Origin: Monocercomonoides exilis PA203
Lineage: Eukaryota > Protista > Preaxostyla
NCBI GenBank assembly: GCA_001643675.2
Contig: LSRY02000005.1
Span: 744,001 to 808,000 of the forward strand
Length of the DNA stretch: 64,000 nucleotides
Direction: 5' to 3'
Made by a program: the position numbers and the translations under genes. Below are positions 5,182-26,627 of the stretch, one piece after another. The stretch's first letter is position 1, and every line of letters starts with the position of its first letter. The notes under the pieces are model-generated. The model was given only the letters and a program-made list of their open reading frames with translations. It had not been told where the DNA came from and did not search any database.

Positions 5182-8100
5182 ATGTTATGCCAAAAAAACA
5201 ATTTTTCTCGTAAAAATCGTTCAAATTCATTTTTCATTCATCTCTCTGAATCACTTTATGTCCTTCACCAACAATTGGGGCTTTCTCCATCGGATGTGCT
5301 TCACAGACAGCATTTTTTATCGTATTTAGAATCAATATTTAAAAGGAAACTTCAGATGAAAGGCTTGCTTAAGATCCCATTTGGAATGATCTCAGGAGTA
5401 TCAGGCATAAATCAACAAATGCGTCCACCAGTCTTTCAAACATTTCAATGCCATTTATTTGGATCATCAATGACTCAACTTGGTTCTGTTTTGTGTGATT
5501 GCGACGTCTTTATTGAAGGTGGGCTGTCCTTTGAGGATCAAAGAAGAGATATAAAAGGGTGGTTACGCGGAATTCAAGAAAGGGAATCCATTTTGAAGGA
5601 AATGGTGATAAAAATGAGAAGAGAAGAGATTGAAAAAATGAAAAATGAAGAAAAGAAGAGAAACGAAGATAAAAATAACGATAAGAGGACTTTAAAAAAT
5701 GATGATGCAACTCAATTAAGCGAAAAGGAAAAAGATAAGATTGCTGAAAAATTTCAAATCAATAGTAATAAAGAAATTAATGAAAAATATACTTTGGATA
5801 CTTCTTCACAAAAGAGCACTGCAATATTTGAAGAAGAATATATTGCTCTTGATGGAGATTCTCGACAGTCGTTTCGCCAACCTACCAACAAAGGAAGTTC
5901 TTTCTTATCTTCAACACTCTCTCATCTTCTTACTGCACACTCATCTTCTCCGACACCTTCTTCTCATCATTTTTCGCCTCCTACTTCGCCTCAATCTCTT
6001 TTGCAGAAGTTGCGAACAAAACAAATGACACAATTGAAAATACAATCTTCTCAATCTATCGAACATGATTCAAAGGAATTAGCTTCTTCGGATTGCATTC
6101 CTCAGCCACTGATGTTAGATAACAACACACAATCTCCCCCAATTTCATCTCCATTAACAGACAAGTTTTTTGAAGCAAAAGCAGAAAACAATGAATTTGA
6201 TGAAGGGTTTATTCCACTGCTCGGTGAGTCTGACTCTTTGCAGCAATTTCAGAAGAAGTCAAATGATTCATTTTCTCCAGAGGATGACAAGTCGAAGCAG
6301 TCACAAATGCCATTCTCTTTACAAGCACAGAACTTAACTCCACAGACTCAGAAATCTATCGAAGCTTCTTCCCCAACGCAGTCACCATCATTCTCCCCTC
6401 TTGTGCGTGTGCCTTCAACCAACACACTCGCCCAGCCCATCCCTCTCTACATCCAGTCAGAATCGTCTGTATCCACACCTCTTCTGACACCTCAATCACC
6501 TTCTTCTCTCTCTGCTTCTCCTTCTCCTTCGCCTTCTCTCTCTCATTCTGAGTTCGACACACCGTCTGCGACGCCTTCGTCTGTTGATGAAGCCACTTCA
6601 GCCATTCCATCATATGCATTTCATTCACCTCCTCCTTTGGACCGTGCAGATAACAGCTCACTTGCCCTCAGCACTTCACCAGTTGCAACTTCTGCTTATT
6701 CTACTTCTCTTTCATCATCATCATCATCATCATCTTCTTCTTCTTCAATTAATTCACTTACAAGCGATACAAACAATGCATCACCTGCCAACAGAGTTCC
6801 TAACAAATCATCTTCTCTGTCTTTATCTCAAACACATCAAGTCCCTTCTCTGAACCCATCTGTCACATCGTCTGATCCTATTTCATCTTCTCAAGTTGCA
6901 TTTCCCCATAATTCTCTGGCTCAACAACTTTATATCATCAAACATCCACCAACAGCATCAGCATCAGCATCAATGTCAACCTTAGTGAGTAAACCATCTG
7001 AAACAGTCGCAACTGATAACTCATCTTCTGTTGCACGCTATATGTGCATCTCTCAACAGAACGAGAATTCCACTCTTTCCAATGAAACATCTTCAGCAAG
7101 TGTGAACACAGCAATTTCATTGCCATCTCCATCACCATCGCTCTCATCATCACCAACAGACACACCTTCTCATTTGCCAAACATCAATTCGAGCGAAACG
7201 CAAACACAATCTCTATCTCAATCACAAATGTCAACTTCTTCACAAAACAATCAACAGCTTCTTCAACAACAGCATTCTCAGCTCGAAACTTCTGCCTCTT
7301 CTTGGAGTCAGTCTCAACCGTCTCCTTTCCCTTCCTCTTCTCTTTCTTCTCCAACCACTTCTCCAAAGGCACCTTCATATCAGGCCAACAAACCCCCACT
7401 CACTTACATCCCTCCACAGCACAACCAGATCCAAAGCCAAAGCCAAAGTCAAACTCAAACACCTCCAAAAAGCTTCTCATTCAACCAGCCTTCTGTCATC
7501 AGCGCCTTCCCCACCCCTGTCTCAATCGGACAAGGATTATCCAAAAAAGCACCTTCACTCCAAAAAAGCCCAGCTCCTGCTCTTCCTTCACCCTTCGCTT
7601 CTTCAGTTCCCCCTTCTTCTTCTTCTTTCTCTTCCTCTTCCTCCTCCTCCTCTGTCTCATCCACTGCAGTCCACTTCCGAAAGACATACGACCACCATCT
7701 GTCTATCAAAGCGCTGAAGATGATGCGCTCTTCTCTCCCCAGCGTCGTCTACCGCCACCGCAGCTGGGTGAAGAAAGTGGAGCTGATACCAGCACGAGTG
7801 CCTATCTTGAGGTTTACTCCACCTCCGCCGTATTCGTCAGACACGACGATGGAGACGCTGAATAAGGACATGAGTGAAGGGTATGATGGATATGAGGGGA
7901 GTGGAGAGGATTATGATGATTATGAAGGATACGATGGGTATGATGAGAAGCCGCTGAATCAACAACAACGACGACAGCAATTGCAGCTGCAGATGCAGCA
8001 GTCAAACAGAGGCAGAGGCGCTGAGAAAGACAGAAGAGCTGCCAAAGGCACACGGATGCGCTTGTATGAGATCCAGCTTCCGTCGTCACCAGAGTTTCGT

Positions 8101-17841: not shown

Positions 17842-19071
17842 TCAATTTGCATGGGCGTGCTGTCTCACTTTCATCTCATCCTTTTCAACACATTTATTCT
17901 CCCATCTGTCAAACCAGAACTGCAAATACTTTACAAGCATCTCTTCATCAAAAGTCCACTTTGTATCAAACACCCCAAACATCCCCAAATGTGCACCTCC
18001 AGGTGAAACAATCGCTGCTACATTATCTCCTGCAGCTTCAATTTCCTTCTTTGGGAATGCTTTGTAGATGGATGCTGGATCGTTTTTTGTTGAAATGAAT
18101 AGCATTGGCACTTCAATCCCATCGAGATAGTGGCAGCTTGAGCTTTCATCATACATTGTGTCAGTATCAGGGAAGCCAAAGGTGTGAATTGTGAAGTAGT
18201 GATCAACAGCTGTTGAAGTGCGAAATGGCTGCTGAAGAAATTCCTTATAACGTGGACTTTCTGTTACGATTTTGCCTTGTTTTTGCAAAAGATGGAACAT
18301 TCGCGATCCAACAGGAGTCAGATGCCTTGGATGGACCAAATGGTCAACTGCTTTGAGATTAAACGGACAACAGATCGCAGCAGCACATAAAACATTTGGT
18401 GGAATAGGCTCTCCGGAAAGCAGATGAGCTGGCTTTCGTGATTGAATAAACTGACTTTTTCTTTCTCCCAAATACTTGGCAACAACATTTCCTCCCATTG
18501 AATAGCCAACAAGAGCTATTGGAGCATCTGGATATCTGGACTGTATTTCTTTCAATGCAATGTGCAAGTCATCTGTATATCCAGCGTAATAAGTTGTAGG
18601 AGTGGTTATTGTTGTTCCACAGCAAGATCTGAATATTACGCAAACTGCCCTCCAGCCAAGCTTGCGAACACACCTCAACGCGAATCTCTGAAGAGGTGGT
18701 TCACTGCTTCCTCCATTAATTCCATGTGAAAATATTACTATTGGAGCATTTTCTGGAAGATCTGTTTTATCTTTTGTTTGAAACCAATCAATGGCAAACT
18801 CGCCACCATCTGATCCAATAAGAACCTCTCTTTGTGGTCTGCTTTTATCTTTGTTACATTTGTAAGAAGCACCAGTATTTATGGCAGCTGATATGCCATA
18901 TTTCCAATGGGCAAAATAAAACATTGGCTTGCTTTGATTTGAAAGAAAGACCAGTGGCTTTCGTCCTTTTCCGACAAGGAGAATTCTTCCAGAATTACGA
19001 GCCCATGCAAATAGCCAAACAAACAAAACTATCAACCCGCACACAACGAAAGCTTTTGATAAATTGTTCAT
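17842..19071 (-). CDS. Alpha/beta-hydrolase of the ABHD1-3/YheT/Eht1 family with N-terminal membrane anchor, intronless
   Basis: DGGEFAIDW, HGINGGSSE, GYSMGG nucleophile elbow, KNDP Asp, GGAHLG His. Likely ATG at 19071 (MNNLSKAF), followed by a hydrophobic helix. Confidence 0.9.
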   Translation of the reverse strand: MNNLSKAFVVCGLIVLFVWLFAWARNSGRILLVGKGRKPLVFLSNQSKPMFYFAHWKYGISAAINTGASYKCNKDKSRPQREVLIGSDGGEFAIDWFQTKDKTDLPENAPIVIFSHGINGGSSEPPLQRFALRCVRKLGWRAVCVIFRSCCGTTITTPTTYYAGYTDDLHIALKEIQSRYPDAPIALVGYSMGGNVVAKYLGERKSQFIQSRKPAHLLSGEPIPPNVLCAAAICCPFNLKAVDHLVHPRHLTPVGSRMFHLLQKQGKIVTESPRYKEFLQQPFRTSTAVDHYFTIHTFGFPDTDTMYDESSSCHYLDGIEVPMLFISTKNDPASIYKAFPKKEIEAAGDNVAAIVSPGGAHLGMFGVFDTKWTFDEEMLVKYLQFWFDRWENKCVEKDEMKVRQHAHAN

Positions 19072-19436
19072 TAGAAAGATTAAAATAACAAGTATACTTC
19101 TCCAAAAAGAAAATCGAAAACAATTTCTCAATTTTTTTTCTTCACAAATTTTCATGCATTTCAAAGCATGCATTAATGAAATTCTAGAGTTGTTTTTTAT
19201 TTAAAAAGATAGTTTCCTTTTCACTTTCGAAAATGATAATTATTTTTTTTTCTAACAAAATAAATCCATTTTTCAATATTTCCATTCAGATGAAATTTTT
19301 AAATATAAAAGATATATTTGTAATTTTTTTATAGGTGTGTTTATCCCCTTGAAAATCATCACACTGCATTTTCTTTTCTCCAAAACGCGAAGTGAATTTT
19401 GAAATTAAAATTTGAAAAAATAATGCTCACGGACAT

Positions 19437-19820
19437 TTATTGCTTCTTCACCTTTTTCTGTTTCGAATTACTTTCTTTTTCTTGCTCTTTATCTTTATCA
19501 ATAAACAATGCATAAATGATATAGGCGATAAGAAACAGATTTACAATTCCGATCGTACAAAAAGCAGCATATTTAATGCTCGTATCTTTATCAAATTCTT
19601 TGTTTTAAAGCAATTACAAAAATATTTCAATTAATAAATATAATTTCAAAATATCAAGAAAAAATAATATACTTTTTAAAAAGAAGCTCTTGGAAATGAA
19701 GTAAGTTGCAAATGAGCTGATAAACATAATTATGGAGTAAATAATAAAACTTTTAAGAGATGACTGTTCTTCATTGTCAATAACTCTTGGTCGCTTTTCG
19801 GAATCTGAAGGAGATGACAT
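19437..19820 (-). CDS. VMA21: V-ATPase assembly factor VMA21, 2 exons
   Basis: Exon 19820-19673, intron 19672-19598, exon 19597-19437 give ~102 aa with two TM helices (SLKSFIIYSIIMFISSFATYFISKSFF; YAAFCTIGIVNLFLIAYIIYALF) and a C-terminal KVKKQ (KxKxx ER-retrieval) motif. Confidence 0.8.
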
Positions 19821-19916
19821 TAATATAATTAGTTGATGGGCAAGATCATAATTCTCGAAGTTGGAATATTGTTTAAAAATGTGATAATATTTAAGACAAA
19901 TCCAAAAAAGCTGATT

Positions 19917-22900
19917 TCATCTTTTTGTTTGCTTTATGAATCTCATATTTGACAATTGCCTGAATTTTGCCAGTGACTCAGAAACGTAAAAAGTTACATC
20001 ATTCACTGATCGAGAAGAAGTATCAACCACAAGATGGGAGATAGACTGAAAGAATGGGTCACAATTGTGAAGAATTTGATCGAGCATTCGCCTTGACGAT
20101 GGAGAACTCGAAATCATATGTCTATGAAGAGATGGAATGGTCGGGAAACTCAACATTGATGAAGATGAAGCTTGAATATCCTTCTCGTTTTTCGAATTCT
20201 CAGTTTTCTCAACATCTTTCTCTTGTTTTTCCTCATTCATCTGCAACTGCATTCTTTTCATCAAGCTTTCTCTCTCTCCCTTCAAATACACCACAGAGGC
20301 TTCAAACGGCTGCGGCATCAGCCCAATCATCGCTTCTCTCCCAACAGATGGCAGTTCTGCCGGAAACTCAGCAACACAACGCAGCTCTCCTTTCACAACA
20401 GAACTGATCACACTCTTCACATCATCACTCAGCGCACGAATGAGCCCGCCTTCGCCTGCTGCGAGTCGGATGGCGCTGATGGGATGCCCCATCCGCTGCT
20501 CTGTCAGCGACGCCACACACAAAAAGGGCAATCCCAATCTCGCTGCAAGTTGCTTCCCAACAGCCGTCTTGCCAACAAAAGGTGGGCCAACTAAGATGAC
20601 AGACGGATGAGTTGATGAGGCGTCATCGGGAAGAGAGAGAAAAGAAGGATTAGAAGAATATGAAGAAGAAGATGATGATGGCTGTGAACCAGAAAGAGAT
20701 GAAGGACGAGAACTAAATGAAAATGAAGGAGCCGAAGACGATGAATTGAAATTGCCTTCTTCCTTTGCGAACTTTCCACTCCCAGGCAACGTTGGAAGAG
20801 GAGCATTTGCAGGGCGATTTGAAATGTATGCGATTGGGTGCGGTGCAAGTGCTGCTCTTTGTGGTGAGGCAACAGGTGTGGATGACACAGAAGAAGTGGA
20901 TTGCTTCTGTGACTTTCCAAAAAACGATGGCAGACTTCTTGTTCCGCCTGCTCTTCCCTCTTCTTCTTCCTCAGCAGCTCTTCTTGTCTGCCTCGATGGC
21001 TGCTGCTGCTGTTGCTGCTGAGCGTCGTTTCTGTTCAGCAAACCAAAAGGAAAGTTGGCAATCGCAGCGACTTCGACAGGAATGCCAAGCACAGCTGCCA
21101 TCTGAGGCACAGCAGCCGACTGCTTCAGCCCCAGGAAGATTGCCAGCGCAGAGACACACGACAGCACCAGCCCAACCGCCAATGCTTTCAGGCCGAACGC
21201 ACCAAACATCACTTTTCCCAGGACAGAGCCAGCGCCAAAGGTAACAAGACCTCCAACAGTTGCAGCAAATGCCCTGAGTGAGAGAGACAGCCTGCGCGCA
21301 AAGCGATACACTGCGGTTCGTTTGGGCTCCATGTGCTGCATCATCTTCCGTCTTCGGAGAGAAACAGAAGAAGAAGATGATGATGAGGAGGACTTTGGCT
21401 GTTTGGAAGATAAGTCATTTGACATCATCTGCTGAGAAGAAGAAGAGTCTTCTCCAATCAAACTGTCAAGCATTTGAAGGCGCTGTGGATCTGATTGTGT
21501 TCTCAGGAAAGGAATCGAATGAAGATCATCAATGCATTCAAAAGCGACAGTCCATAGCTCATTCGCCCAGGGTGAGTCAAACAGCTCATTGAGCCGTGGA
21601 ATGGAAATGGCAAGCAACGACGGCTCTGACAAAGAAGAGCTGTCATCAAATGTTGTTGTGTTTGAATGAGTCTTAGATGGTTTCTGTGTTGTTTGCTGTT
21701 CATCTGAGTCTTGTGAAATGACATGCGGCAGACTAACAGCTTGGGAAAGGTGATGTGAGTGATGCGATGGTTGTGTGATTTTGAATGGCTGGATAACAGT
21801 TGAATCCTTTTCAGCGTTAGAAACACCTTTTGTGTATTTTTCATTCACAGAATCAGATGTTTGTCTAACCGATGCCATTGGCTCAAGAGGCTCGCGAAGC
21901 TGAGAAGGCTCAGAGATTGAATGTGAAATAAAGTTTGTTAAAGACTTTTCAGACGAATCCTGAAGTTCAACCATTTCCACTTGTGAAAACTCAATTTGAC
22001 TTGAAAATGAAGGTGACGAAGACATTGATAAAATAGAAGAGGAAGAGGAGGGAGAAGAAGAAAAAGAGTTTTGCAGAGTCGACGAATATGAGTTTCGCAA
22101 CGGAGCACTCAATAAATTGCTATCACTTCGATCAACAGCAGCAGGAAGTCTGGTGTTACAGAGTTTCAATGCTTCCTCGACTGAAATGCTTCGTGGAAGA
22201 AAAGGATTCGAATGCTCCACCATCACAAAGCCAAGCTGAACAGGCGGAACAATAATTGGTACGTGCTTGCGCCTTGTCACATTCAGAAGCAATCTCCATT
22301 GCTTTGATGGTAAAGTCGGAGTGCTATTTGGAGAAGCGGTGGTTGAAGCATTTTGAGTCAACGTCTGAGATGCAGAGGAAGAAGCGGAAGCTGATTTTTC
22401 TTGGGGCTCTGTGGATTCTTCAATCCATTTCAAATGTATCTTCACATTGATTCCTTCGTTCAGTCCGCCAACATCTGAATCATTCCATATTCTCCGAGTG
22501 TTGCTTGATTGCTGCAAAGCCTTTTTATTTTTCTTTGCTGAGCTTCCGAAGTCTTCATTCGAATCACTCGAATTGATTGGTAGGTGATAGCGATGGCCCA
22601 ACCAGTTCCAGCGCTTAATCATATACTGCACATCTTCCTCACATCGCCTTCTCCGCTCTTCAAACTGAGACGAGCAGCCACCTGGAATGCAGGCACACCC
22701 AGCATGCGTGAACACAACCATCGTGTTGGTACGCAGAATCCTCCCACCAAGAAGGAGAAGGAGAAGTGAAATGTGGTCGAGGAATAAGTTGTTGGCTATT
22801 TGAGTTGAAATGTGCAGAGCGGAAAGAAGCTGAGGTTTTGAGATGATTGTTGGTTGTGGAAGGAGAATAGATGAAGAAGACATTGGTGATAATGAACTTG

Positions 22901-23738
22901 TTGTGGAGGAGGAGGATGGAGAAGAAGAAATAGAAGCATCATCAGCAGAACATTGTGTTGATTGCAAATTCAGTTTTGATGTTGAAGAAGTGGCTGAAGA
23001 TGTGACATTTCCTCGATTTTGTGGTTGAAAGTTCGCCATTCTGTTCATCAGAAGGCGCCAGTGAGTTCCCATTAATTCAGAGACATAAAGAACAAGATGA
23101 AACGGGCCATTTGATCTTTCTCCTTCAAGAAGAGTGCGCTTATCAGACTCAGTTACAATATCGCGATGAACAAGTGGTTTCCACCCTGTTGATTCCTTTT
23201 CTTGCTCTGCTGCTTGCTTCATTTCAATTTGTCTTTTAATGAAATCCGTGAATGGAATTGGCAATTCGATAAATAATCGTTTACAAGCATCTCGAATTTC
23301 AGAGAGCCATTTGCTCGCAGAAGTGTTTTCTGTGAAGATTGTGGAATCCTCAGAGTTCAAAGAGAGAGAAAAAATTGGATCATCTGGTCGTAAAAGGGAT
23401 TCTTTTGGCACAGTTGCTTCAACAACACGAATAACAACGTCCCTGAGAATTATGCGGTAAACGCTAACATGTTGTGAAATCTTGAAAGAAACATGAGTTT
23501 CATCTGAATTGAAAACGCCATTTGATAAACTTGTTTCGTAACTTGGAATGGGTGCAAAGTACCGCTCCCAATTTTCAGCACTTGTTCCTAATGATGAACT
23601 TGCAATCCAGTCAGAAGGTATTCCAAGAAGAGAAGCAATTGTAAGTGATTTTCCGCATTGAGGAGTTCCTAAAACAAATATATTGATTCCAGCTATTCCC
23701 ATTTCTGAGAATTCCTTTACAAGCTTATCCTGCGCCAT
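19917..23738 (-). CDS. 1273-aa fusion: N-terminal Toc34/AIG1-like P-loop GTPase-like domain, hydrophobic TM segments, C-terminal shikimate-kinase-like domain
   Basis: INIFVLGTPQCGKSLTIASLLG, HLVLYVSEL, TMVVFTHAG, GFVMVEHS, PWANELW; hydrophobic block at ~21270-21035; VILVGPPFVGKTAVGKQLAARLGLPF...GEGG...VVYLKG...DPFFQSISHLVVDTSSRS. Confidence 0.7.
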   Translation of the reverse strand: MAQDKLVKEFSEMGIAGINIFVLGTPQCGKSLTIASLLGIPSDWIASSSLGTSAENWERYFAPIPSYETSLSNGVFNSDETHVSFKISQHVSVYRIILRDVVIRVVEATVPKESLLRPDDPIFSLSLNSEDSTIFTENTSASKWLSEIRDACKRLFIELPIPFTDFIKRQIEMKQAAEQEKESTGWKPLVHRDIVTESDKRTLLEGERSNGPFHLVLYVSELMGTHWRLLMNRMANFQPQNRGNVTSSATSSTSKLNLQSTQCSADDASISSSPSSSSTTSSLSPMSSSSILLPQPTIISKPQLLSALHISTQIANNLFLDHISLLLLLLGGRILRTNTMVVFTHAGCACIPGGCSSQFEERRRRCEEDVQYMIKRWNWLGHRYHLPINSSDSNEDFGSSAKKNKKALQQSSNTRRIWNDSDVGGLNEGINVKIHLKWIEESTEPQEKSASASSSASQTLTQNASTTASPNSTPTLPSKQWRLLLNVTRRKHVPIIVPPVQLGFVMVEHSNPFLPRSISVEEALKLCNTRLPAAVDRSDSNLLSAPLRNSYSSTLQNSFSSSPSSSSSILSMSSSPSFSSQIEFSQVEMVELQDSSEKSLTNFISHSISEPSQLREPLEPMASVRQTSDSVNEKYTKGVSNAEKDSTVIQPFKITQPSHHSHHLSQAVSLPHVISQDSDEQQTTQKPSKTHSNTTTFDDSSSLSEPSLLAISIPRLNELFDSPWANELWTVAFECIDDLHSIPFLRTQSDPQRLQMLDSLIGEDSSSSQQMMSNDLSSKQPKSSSSSSSSSVSLRRRKMMQHMEPKRTAVYRFARRLSLSLRAFAATVGGLVTFGAGSVLGKVMFGAFGLKALAVGLVLSCVSALAIFLGLKQSAAVPQMAAVLGIPVEVAAIANFPFGLLNRNDAQQQQQQQPSRQTRRAAEEEEEGRAGGTRSLPSFFGKSQKQSTSSVSSTPVASPQRAALAPHPIAYISNRPANAPLPTLPGSGKFAKEEGNFNSSSSAPSFSFSSRPSSLSGSQPSSSSSSYSSNPSFLSLPDDASSTHPSVILVGPPFVGKTAVGKQLAARLGLPFLCVASLTEQRMGHPISAIRLAAGEGGLIRALSDDVKSVISSVVKGELRCVAEFPAELPSVGREAMIGLMPQPFEASVVYLKGERESLMKRMQLQMNEEKQEKDVEKTENSKNEKDIQASSSSMLSFPTIPSLHRHMISSSPSSRRMLDQILHNCDPFFQSISHLVVDTSSRSVNDVTFYVSESLAKFRQLSNMRFIKQTKR

Positions 23739-24325
23739 TGTATTTATTTCACCTTATATTTCACAGTTTAAACAAAAATAAGTTCAAAATTAACGAAACA
23801 ATTCATTAAAACGAAAATACTTTGTTCGGTCGAATTAATTCGATAAACATTTGCTAATTGAGAATCTTGTGTGATAATACACCAGTCTTTATCAGCATTC
23901 TCTGAATTTTCATTTTCTTCCATCTATTTTCAGAGAAATCAAAAATTTACTAAGTCAGAAAAAGATAATGCCCATATCAAAAATATGAAAATTCAAAAAA
24001 CAAATTATTCAATTATATTGAACATATTAAAACTTGAAAAAGAATATGTTTTTGAGAACAAGAAAAAATAAAAAATTGATAAAGGGCACTGAAATAAAAA
24101 AATATTTCAGGTATTCTTGAGTTTTCATGAGTTTATTTGTTTTTATCTTTAATGTTTCGGAGAAATTAATAAAATGAAATTTGATTTTGATGGGTGCAAA
24201 TGCTTTTTAGAAAAGAAATATTTCATGATGTCATTTTTTTAATTACTTTATCTTTTCCTAAATATTATACAATATAAAATGGAAAATAGAAGAACCACAT
24301 AGTCACACTTCCATATCTGACATAT

Positions 24326-26627
24326 ATGCGAACAATGAAATCGTATGGACGTTTTTCTCAATTGAAGTCTGCTCCTGAAGAAAAATCGACAAAACTTTCG
24401 CGCAACTCAACAATATTACCATCAAACTCGAAAGACAATGCTTCAAATAACGAAAAAGTTGATCCTCGCCTTTCACCGAGATTTCATAGATTTACAAGAA
24501 CAAGAGTTTGCACAATTTTGCTGAATTACAAATAACAATATTTTTTTAATATTCTTAAACAACAATTTCCAAAGACACTAAGAACAATTTCCAGAATCAA
24601 CATATCACTGTCCGAGAGACTTTCATTTTTATTTTTTGTTCTATTTATGTGTGCAACGGAGTGGATATTTCTTTGTCGACCAAGTTGGCTCCCGATAGTT
24701 TACGTTCTAGTCATGATTCCAGTATGAGCATCGCTTTTTACTTTCAATTTTGTAATGTTGTTATTTTAATATCATCAATTCGTTCACGCTTGGCTTTCTG
24801 AACATTTGTCAATAAAAAATATATTTCAAATTTATTTTTCAGTTAGTCTTAGGAAGGATATTCTATTATCATCATAGAAAAGTGTGCAACATTTTGTTTA
24901 TAAACAGAAACTTAATTCATTTTATTCGACAAACCAAACTTCATTTGAAAATTTGCAATTAACATTAAAATAGGCACATTTTTATCTTTTGGATTATTGC
25001 TACTTCGGAAATGGAGTTCTGGTTTTCTTTTTATTCGTATTTCCGACATCCAGACTGCTTTGGGAATGTTGCTTTTTATCCGCATCTGGCCCTCTTCTTT
25101 CGGCCATTATAACTTGGAGAAATTCGCTGGTGTTCCATTCTTTTGACAAAATGATCTCTGGTTTGACATTCACATACCTTTTTTAAATATTAATATTTAT
25201 CAACCATTTATTTTTCCTTATTTAATGAATGATTTATGCCTTTTTTTAATTGTCATTCAAATTTTTTTGAACAGTTTGCCTTCACTTCTTCCCTCCGCTT
25301 GTTGTCTACTCACTCCGCTGGATCAACAAAGACTATGCTTCCATTACTCAGCCATTCACCCCATTCACTTCAGAAAACCAGCCTTTAACAGCTTCTTCCC
25401 TCCGCTCCGTCCTCTTTTATTCATTTAAGCATTCACCCCCGCTGCCAATGGAGTCTTCTTGCACATCGCCGCTTCCTTTCTCCATCTCTCTGCGTGGCTT
25501 CTTTCTCCACCTCCTCCTCTATTTTGTGTGGCAGATCTCTTATTACGTGAAGGTGATGCTGATCGATGCCAGATACCTCGAACAGCACCAGGAGTTCGTC
25601 TTTTCTGAGCGCAAACTCACAAACAGACTGAAAACAGGCTCTTTCTTGTACAAACTGTACTTTGAGTGGTCGCATTCACGCTGGGTGAAGGGAACGTGGT
25701 ACACATGTTTGATTCAGTTATTGCTTTTCTTATCAAGTTAAATATTGTTTCTTTCGTTGAAACAACTTTTCTTTCTTTCCTTCACATTTTTCTTCAATTT
25801 TGGCCTTTTTTATTCAAAACATTTTATCCTTTCATCTGTTAGTGTGCCAATTTGTGTTCACTTTTCTAACAACACTGCCTGGAATTCTGATGTTCCAGTC
25901 TTTCTTCTTCCACACGCTTGCTATTTTGTTTGGGTTGGCTGTGGCAACTTGGAATGGCGCAAACTTTTACATTGCAAGGATCATCAAGGCAAAAGCAGAC
26001 AAGCCGGCTTCATCGTCTTCTTCCACTGCAGCAACGTCTAGTTCACTGCCTTCGTCTTCCTCTTCAACATCTTCCTCCTCAGCAACAACTTCGCAACCGA
26101 CAGCTCTTCTTTCTTCTGCTTCTGTATCGACTGCTCATCCCATTCAGAGCAGAACAGATTCGAGTGCTGAAAGAGCAGCTTCAATGGACGCATCAACAGA
26201 CACATCCGACTTGGAGCTTCTATCTTCTCCTTCTTCCTCTCTTTCTCTTTCTTCCCCTTCACCTTCTCTTTCTCCTTCTCATGACACATCCAACCTTTAC
26301 GTCACATTCACTGCTGCTGATCATCCGCCATATTTGATGCCTTACCCTTTGTCTTCACTTCCCTTTGTGGGCAACAGCCTTTCGCCTGGTCTTGATGTGT
26401 TCCCAGCTGGTAGCACGGGGCAAGGAGAAGGCATGAGTGGATTAGCCAGATCGCAATACTACTTCTCTGCATATAGCGAAGATGACACAGACAGAAGCGA
26501 TGGGTTCAGTGACAATGAAGACACAGAGGCTACCAGAGACACAGAAACTGGATCAGAATTTGAGGAAGAGGAGCAGAAGACTGAACAAGATAAAAGCGAA
26601 GGAGAAATGAACACACAAAATGAATAA
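24326..26627 (+). CDS. GPC1: Glycerophosphocholine acyltransferase GPC1/GPCAT (DUF2838) multi-pass membrane protein, ~6 exons
   Basis: Spliced product contains HFYLLDYCYFGN, ASGPLLSAIITWRNSLVFHSFDKMIS, LHFFPP, YFVWQISYYV and ATWNGANFYI, all typical DUF2838 motifs. Confidence 0.85.

Follow-up and report, generated by a model that had tools for sequence, protein, structure and literature searches.

The 64,000-nucleotide stretch of the Monocercomonoides exilis PA203 genome analysed here (contig LSRY02000005.1, positions 744,001 to 808,000 of the forward strand; hereafter the window, C47:744001-808000 in the 82.3-Mb, 101-contig genome sequence that we searched) encodes on its minus strand MONOS_3166, a protein with two P-loop domains separated by a predicted membrane anchor. 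We lean towards viewing MONOS_3166 as an oxymonad-only, endomembrane-anchored protein that would combine a decayed TRAFAC-type G domain, nearest to those of the Toc34/Toc33-AIG1 group, with a domain derived from shikimate kinase (SK), and that would serve as a receptor or scaffold.

Architecture and relatives of MONOS_3166

An earlier note on this DNA, made from the sequence alone, had described one uninterrupted open reading frame (ORF) of 1273 amino acids (aa) with two P-loops. The list of ORFs in the window confirms it, without interruption, on the minus strand at 19917-23738, with Walker A motifs at aa 24-31 and aa 1051-1058. The parts of the protein that matter for its interpretation are the following (window coordinates; residues counted in the 1273-aa ORF).

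22404..23738, minus strand: N-terminal G-domain-like region (aa 1-445), broken by Ser-rich inserts; homologous to the Blattamonas N-terminus (E 1.6e-5), the model of that ortholog best matching Toc34/Toc33
23646..23669, minus strand: N-terminal Walker A/G1 motif, GTPQCGKS (aa 24-31), from the sequence and comparison with relatives
23406..23438, minus strand: place of G3, a predicted strand ending in Glu, VVIRVVEATVP (aa 101-111), with the Gly absent in alignments; equivalent to strand E107-115 of the ortholog model
22839..23033, minus strand: Ser-rich low-complexity insert (aa 236-300), absent from the Blattamonas ortholog in alignments
22698..22787, minus strand: block ending VVFTHAG (aa 318-347), putative helix 3/strand 5/G4; its profile (A8) matches Toc120/Toc90 at E 0.36
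21459..21575, minus strand: most conserved block of the family, WxNELW..AFE..D (aa 722-760), just before the anchor; 14 invariant columns in alignment A10
21036..21281, minus strand: hydrophobic Gly/Ala/Ser-rich predicted membrane anchor (aa 820-901), from a Kyte-Doolittle scan, with equivalents in paralog and ortholog
19920..20612, minus strand: SK-derived P-loop domain, catalytically degenerate by its motif losses (aa 1043-1273); best matches are Pfam SKI and shikimate kinases of the PDB, with support from a family profile
20565-20588, minus strand: C-terminal Walker A motif, GPPFVGKT (aa 1051-1058), from the sequence

The M. exilis genome holds exactly one paralog, on contig C23 (~850.8-856.0 kb, locus L006), with an identical order of blocks and ~36-37% identity to MONOS_3166 in both terminal domains. 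A short phase-2 GT..AG intron (L006 ~7290-7345, L006 being C23:848000-857999) lies between its first ~232 codons and a second exon of 1479 codons; the two exons entered all searches and alignments separately. This paralog was not found in either protein library, and its gene model may be missing or split.

An exhaustive hidden Markov model (HMM) search of 1.84 billion representative proteins with a profile of the N-terminal block returned only four matches, namely the query, a 1007-aa protein of the oxymonad Blattamonas nauphoetae (BLNAU_20041, E 1.6e-5), a fragment of 96 aa from a metagenome assembly in ENA (P0003) and a coral protein (P0002). The coral match is spurious, as it concerns a repeat protein that has only a short GP-x-HLV motif in common with the family. 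BLNAU_20041 carries all the family blocks, the membrane anchor and the C-terminal SK-like domain, so that the single polypeptide proposed earlier, with its N-terminal P-loop domain, anchor and degenerate SK domain, recurs both in the M. exilis paralog and in a second oxymonad. A word-index protein search recovered the query alone, and no relatives were found in the JGI metagenome contigs scanned. The architecture of two P-loop domains around an anchor, which the earlier note had supposed to be undescribed, was found neither elsewhere in the 1.8 billion representative proteins nor in the literature searched, where we also found no paper on MONOS_3166 or on shikimate kinase in Monocercomonoides. 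The family known so far is oxymonad-only: M. exilis contributes two paralogs and Blattamonas one gene, to which a single metagenome fragment is added.

The annotated start of the BLNAU_20041 gene model is placed too far downstream: ahead of its ATG, 33 in-frame codons (L009:5902-6000, JARBJD010000275.1) align with the family N-terminus and show a degenerate P-loop, GTTMESLS. Stops lie further upstream of these codons, which makes an unannotated upstream exon likely.

A predicted G domain at the N-terminus

The N-terminal ~450 aa would represent a highly divergent TRAFAC-type G domain, the nearest predicted fold being that of the Toc34/Toc33-AIG1 (septin-like) clade. This reading comes from an AlphaFold 2 model of the N-terminal 453 aa of the Blattamonas ortholog, which is free of the Ser-rich inserts, built from an alignment of family members only (pTM 0.49; mean pLDDT 49, with values of 60-89 over residues ~25-180). 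An exhaustive structural search with this model against 48,161 PDB representatives placed Arabidopsis Toc33 first (2j3e, Z 8.6, rmsd 4.1 Å over 189 residues), and nearly all of the top 50 matches were GTPases, including Rag, HflX, Arf, LeoA, a septin, GIMAP4/7 and Sey1. When the candidates from Foldseek were compared again, pea Toc34 and Arabidopsis Toc33 took the top four places (Z 9.2, 8.8, 8.6 and 8.6; rmsd ~4 Å over 179-189 residues), followed in fifth place by RagD (Z 8.0, 154 residues). The model places Walker A after strand 1 and before helix 1, with a beta hairpin ahead of the expected place of G3, as in TRAFAC GTPases. Judging from this predicted structure, the N-terminal domain very probably has a G-domain fold, and a specific kinship with the Toc34/AIG1/septin-like clade appears reasonably probable.

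One sequence comparison points in the same direction: among PDB entries at E <= 10, the sole match of the profile of block A8, which ends in VVFTHAG, was to residues 398-429 of Toc120/Toc90, a Toc159-family GTPase (E 0.36). The alignment covers the ..VLTHAH.. G4 region of that protein; the match is non-significant alone, and a longer profile gives E 2.6. Two other candidates were rejected. The sole PDB match of block A10, to G-alpha-13 (E 0.23), is at chance level, and an origin of the N-terminal domain as a duplicate of the SK-like domain found no footing in hhalign, which aligns the P-loop only (probability 7%).

The G motifs themselves have decayed to different degrees among the members compared.

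G1: GTPQCGKS in MONOS_3166; GPPGSGKS in the paralog; GTTMESLS (lost) in Blattamonas; GPPHSGKS in fragment P0003
G3 position: VVEATVP in MONOS_3166; IVEVTLP in the paralog; ILFILLP in Blattamonas; - in P0003
THA-type G4: FTHAG in MONOS_3166; FSFAN in the paralog; LGADL in Blattamonas; - in P0003

The DxxG glycine of G3 is present in none of MONOS_3166, the paralog and Blattamonas, in agreement with the earlier observation that VVEATVP replaces this motif, and a Glu occurs there in the M. exilis copies only. The THA-type G4 is limited to MONOS_3166 and conserved in neither paralog nor ortholog. Both M. exilis copies keep NGPFHLV.. at the place of the AIG1 conserved box between G3 and G4, and these letters may resemble that box in GIMAP/AIG1 proteins. 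The M. exilis domain would thus retain Walker A and the acidic residue that ends strand 3, without the G3 glycine or a conserved G4. Less durable were the motif pairs (THA, VEHS, LVLYV and WANELW) previously read as a Toc34 signature: neither paralog nor ortholog keeps their Toc34-like residues, and the LVLYV, VEHS and WANELW pairs are family-conserved hydrophobic blocks.

An unlikely alternative is that the N-terminal domain is a P-loop domain of GTPase fold from outside the AIG1/Toc/septin-like clade, such as a degenerate fusogen of the dynamin superfamily (atlastin, Sey1 or mitofusin type). Rag, HflX, Arf, LeoA, BDLP and Sey1 do match the ortholog model at Z 6.2-8.0, within 1-3 units of Toc34. 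The fusogen layout of GTPase, helical region, transmembrane hairpin and C-terminal tail is also resembled, the hairpin near the C-terminus fits, and the dynamin-like IniA gives a weak PDB profile match (E 0.96). However, Toc34 and Toc33 hold the top four places with the longest alignments (179-189 versus ~150 residues), the only sequence match of the putative G4 block is a Toc159-family protein, and no dynamin, GBP or RHD3 signal was obtained with Pfam for MONOS_3166, its paralog or its ortholog.

A C-terminal domain derived from shikimate kinase

The C-terminal ~230 aa are securely homologous to shikimate kinase by sequence, because Pfam SKI, the PDB matches and a family profile with only PF01202 matches all agree. 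Against the SKI cut-off of 22.1 bits (PF01202), MONOS_3166 scores 27.8 bits as a whole protein and 35.5 bits as a C-terminal piece, both above the threshold; the Blattamonas ortholog reaches 43.2 bits over profile positions 1-151 of 159, and the C23 paralog, at 21.2 bits, falls slightly under. The best PDB sequence matches of the domain are shikimate kinases, and a profile of the three oxymonad SK domains, run against 5.8 billion sequences, found 30 matches, every one of them with PF01202 (30/30; best E 1.1e-8). Identity to the best SK matches, which were drawn from a word-biased search, is 25-29%. The earlier impression that this domain tracks AroK is borne out by these matches, and in MONOS_3166 the alignment with AroK extends over the first 65 aa of the domain and over the DP-x-F..VVD segment at its C-terminus.

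We aligned the three oxymonad domains with seven real shikimate kinases taken from the family-profile matches. All three oxymonad members carry other residues in place of the second Asp of DxD, the GGG loop, the LID Arg ahead of the conserved Pro and the RxPxY Arg, which upholds the losses of DxD, GGG and RxPxY Arg listed in the earlier note, the loss at DxD being that of the second Asp. The GGG loop position in M. exilis is occupied by the family motif EFPxEL, the LID holds a long low-complexity insert, and a TE-x-R-x-G element is retained. Walker A is kept as GKT in MONOS_3166 and GKS in the paralog, and Blattamonas has GKH, which is not GK[ST]. Judged from these residues, the domain is an SK-derived pseudoenzyme or at most a nucleotide-binding module, and MONOS_3166 is not a shikimate kinase. 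It is an SK descendant of which only the P-loop core is left, every residue for shikimate binding or catalysis having been lost. A six-frame search of the 82-Mb genome found no EPSP synthase, chorismate synthase or second SKI domain, and the same searches were positive in 14 of 14 control genomes. The acquisition of the SK domain by lateral transfer, once suggested, is unsupported.

It is improbable that the C-terminal domain has instead been neofunctionalised and works as a P-loop kinase or ATPase on a non-shikimate substrate, under regulation by the N-terminal domain. The intact Walker A of both M. exilis copies, the conservation of the family-specific motifs EFPxEL and SH-hVVD and the retention of TE-x-R-x-G would suit such an activity, but no member retains the LID Arg or the catalytic/substrate Asp, GKH replaces GK[ST] in Blattamonas, and a long low-complexity insert replaces the LID in M. 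exilis.

Evidence that weighs against the N-terminal assignment

Several results count against a Toc34/AIG1-like G domain, and some of them against the nucleotide-dependent function that such a domain would imply. The structural evidence comes from one medium-quality ortholog model and not from MONOS_3166 itself, for which AlphaFold (aa 1-520, 3-row alignment) produced an unusable model (pLDDT 33). The highest Z, 9.2, is only ~1 above those of other GTPases and near the background of 7-8 stated for the tool. Foldseek found no match at E <= 0.001; its top weak rows were mainly septins, and its Toc34 rows (3bb1), which had the highest probability and TM-score, were interspersed with rows for the tyrosine phosphatase PTP1B that we took as noise. 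An atlas structural search with the ortholog model yielded nothing.

Nor does any sequence-profile method, including the search of 1.8 billion proteins, tie the N-terminus to a GTPase family at a significant E. Pfam and NCBIfam searches with the N-termini of MONOS_3166, paralog and ortholog gave nothing or ATPase noise at the level of Walker A; N-terminal pieces of 240, 500 and 540 aa and profiles A5, A7 and A9 gave P-loop ATPase noise or nothing against Pfam, NCBIfam and the PDB; and a PDB sequence/profile search with the first N-terminal block brought up only the P-loops of ClpX and PilT (E > 0.1). The AIG1 domain is defined by G1-G4, G5/IAN and the conserved box (PMC7053062), and its Pfam model (PF04548) matched none of MONOS_3166, paralog and ortholog even at E <= 10. 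MONOS_3166 was not among even the loose genome candidates for the Pfam AIG1 or septin models. A search by language-model features assigned G-domain families to MONOS_3166 (0.92) and AAA fragments to the paralog (0.87), a disagreement that led us to treat it as uninformative. Furthermore, the N-terminal Walker A lysine is lost in Blattamonas, and this loss together with the C-terminal GKH suggests that what the family conserves may be a function other than nucleotide binding. The anchor, finally, could make two or three membrane passes, its topology being a prediction. In the whole M. exilis genome, a six-frame search revealed no Pfam AIG1 or septin member above the cut-off.

The Toc34/AIG1-like reading put forward in the earlier note gains moderate support, which differs by method. 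Structure comparison of the ortholog model leads to GTPases with Toc34/Toc33 on top, whereas the model of the protein's own N-terminus failed, the Foldseek E values are weak and no profile connects it with AIG1, Toc or septin families. By profile and G3 the domain lies outside AIG1, though it is probably built on the same fold.

That the region is not an NTPase at all, with a P-loop present as a relic or by chance in a lineage-specific fold and a G-domain match produced by a weak model of a generic alpha/beta sandwich, we regard as decidedly improbable. The negative outcome of every sequence search, the mean pLDDT of only 49, the Foldseek and atlas results with their PTP1B noise and the Blattamonas lysine would all agree with it. 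But Walker A occurs in three of the four sequences, its position in the model falls precisely where strand 1 gives way to helix 1, and the top 50 structural matches are overwhelmingly GTPases rather than assorted Rossmann folds.

A probable membrane-anchored scaffold

Between its two P-loop domains, MONOS_3166 would consist of long Ser-rich linkers and a conserved helical block followed by a Gly/Ala-rich transmembrane hairpin. The anchor comprises one strong predicted transmembrane segment (aa ~850-872) with a weaker, Gly-rich segment on its N-terminal side and a marginal one on its C-terminal side, in line with the two to three hydrophobic segments noted earlier, and an Arg/Lys-rich flank precedes the anchor. 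It is probably, from its hydrophobicity, a hairpin of two transmembrane segments; with two passes and a positive N-terminal flank, both P-loop domains would face the cytosol.

MONOS_3166 is most likely a membrane-anchored pseudo-NTPase scaffold. In Toc34 and several GIMAPs a C-terminal anchor keeps the G domain on an organelle membrane, and these proteins work by dimerising in a nucleotide-dependent manner (PMC8201404, PMC12845241); by analogy MONOS_3166 could be a nucleotide-binding, non-hydrolysing and dimerising receptor or scaffold on an organelle membrane. The loss of the N-terminal Walker A lysine in Blattamonas, together with its C-terminal GKH, makes it probable that the conserved function needs no hydrolysis. 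A metabolite-sensing role, as the earlier note had entertained, is unsupported.

The closest parallel is with Toc34/Toc33 and the Toc159 family, which provide, respectively, the top structural matches of the ortholog model and the only PDB sequence match of the putative G4 block, and likewise have a G domain of cytosolic type followed by a C-terminal membrane anchor. Unlike Toc34/Toc33, however, MONOS_3166 has no PF04548 match and no G3 DxxG, its G4 is not conserved and Walker A is lost in Blattamonas; it also has large Ser-rich inserts and, instead of a simple tail anchor, a predicted transmembrane hairpin plus an extra C-terminal domain. GIMAP/IAN proteins possess a septin-like G domain, a helical extension and, in some, C-terminal transmembrane anchors on organelle membranes, with an activity controlled by dimerisation (PMC8201404). 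GIMAP2, 4, 5 and 7 match the ortholog model at Z 6.2-6.9, but in MONOS_3166 only G1 is clear and there is no Pfam match. As for the C-terminal domain, AroK/AroL (PF01202) share with it a homologous fold and Walker A, whereas the oxymonad domain has replaced all shikimate-binding and catalytic residues, contains a long LID insert and is fused behind a membrane anchor in a genome in which no pathway enzymes were found. The plant proteins SKL1 and SKL2 are non-enzymatic, SK-derived proteins that have lost SK residues and been recruited to other roles; they are plastid-targeted and soluble. They resemble the oxymonad domain in their common SK ancestry and their lost SK residues.

It was among the oxymonads that a eukaryote was first shown to have no mitochondria. 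Since M. exilis has no plastid, the function of MONOS_3166 cannot be plastid import. The earlier note had considered such a protein striking in a plastid-less lineage, a view that loses its force given that AIG1-clade GTPases are widespread outside plastid import (PMC12845241, PMC8201404). Animals, plants and protists have proteins of this clade that serve other purposes (PMC12845241, PMC7053062), so that no plastid or mitochondrial remnant is implied, and the family has no bearing on hidden plastids or mitochondria. We give very little credence to a bolder version, in which MONOS_3166 would be the sole surviving, extremely diverged AIG1/Toc-clade member in oxymonads and a Toc34-style nucleotide-gated receptor on an uncharacterised endomembrane compartment of an amitochondriate cell (involved, for example, in protein targeting or organelle contact), its dead SK domain acting as a second nucleotide-sensing or docking module.

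MONOS_3166 is an oxymonad-restricted invention, undescribed and made from known folds, in which two decayed nucleotide-binding folds appear to surround a membrane anchor. If its Toc34/AIG1-like assignment is true, membrane-anchored septin-like G domains have been recruited independently of plastids and immunity. The protein may also provide a handle on an oxymonad membrane compartment of unknown nature, and its C-terminal domain appears to be a clean example of a metabolic kinase fold persisting as a pseudoenzyme after loss of the pathway.

Gene model and transcripts

The 1273-aa ORF corresponds with 100% match to residues 40-1312 of the GenBank "uncharacterized protein MONOS_3166" (P0001, Monocercomonoides exilis). 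The annotated coding sequence (CDS) of 1312 aa corrects the ORF-only model, since an upstream exon adds 34 codons; the 39 extra residues are encoded by this exon (23821-23923) together with the opening 14 nt of the main exon (start at 23752).

19917..23752, minus strand: main coding exon of MONOS_3166, with ATG at 23738 and stop TGA at 19917-19919; identical to P0001, with RNA contigs colinear over 19680-23752
23753-23820, minus strand: 68-nt GT..AG intron between upstream and main exons, from the annotation and sequence inspection
23821..23923, minus strand: annotated upstream exon (34 codons + 1 nt), located by tblastn with the P0001 N-terminus and sequence inspection; the RNA contigs do not reach it

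The GC content of the ORF is 40-52%, compared with 26-32% in its flanks. RNA evidence consists of contigs assembled from four RNA-seq runs of one study (X1-X4). One X1 contig covers 19680-21398, spanning the SK-like domain, linker and membrane anchor, and a second covers 21469-23752 (aa 1-756), both with no differences and no gaps; contigs of X2 and X3 close the 70-nt gap that separates them. The longer of the two (X1 record 6) stops exactly at 23752, the annotated splice acceptor, with six letters unaligned. An X4 contig joins 19597 to 19673 (CT..AC on the plus strand, that is, GT..AG on the minus strand), which indicates that the material is spliced RNA of the gene's strand. In the contigs of the four runs we found no well-supported joint inside the ORF, the many joints of 20-21 letters seen there being GAA-repeat chimeras.

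MONOS_3166 is thus real and expressed. A single transcript, for which the earlier note had proposed RNA-seq as a check, is supported by the bridged colinear tiling over 19680-23752 but not proven, because no one contig spans the whole gene. A stronger argument than the RNA for one polypeptide is that relatives keep the whole architecture.

GAA/GAG-rich coding repeats (Glu/Lys/Ser tracts) at 20650-20680, 21366-21390 and 22749-22770 draw chimeric joints of 20-21 letters and loose ends of unrelated transcripts, and the spikes in RNA depth at these three places are artefacts. Downstream, ~245 nt beyond the MONOS_3166 stop, a 75-nt GT..AG intron (19598-19672, minus strand) has been removed from RNA contigs in three of the runs. 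Either it belongs to the 3' untranslated region (UTR), or its removal links the transcript to the 5' end of the following gene, which has the same orientation.

Two neighbouring ORFs also show N-terminal hydrophobic segments. A 443-aa ORF just downstream (17842-19173, minus strand) has one such segment and a GYSMGG motif of the kind usual at the nucleophile elbow of alpha/beta-hydrolases. In a 275-aa ORF on the plus strand (25800-26627), the hydrophobic segments are followed by long Ser-rich and acidic low-complexity tracts.

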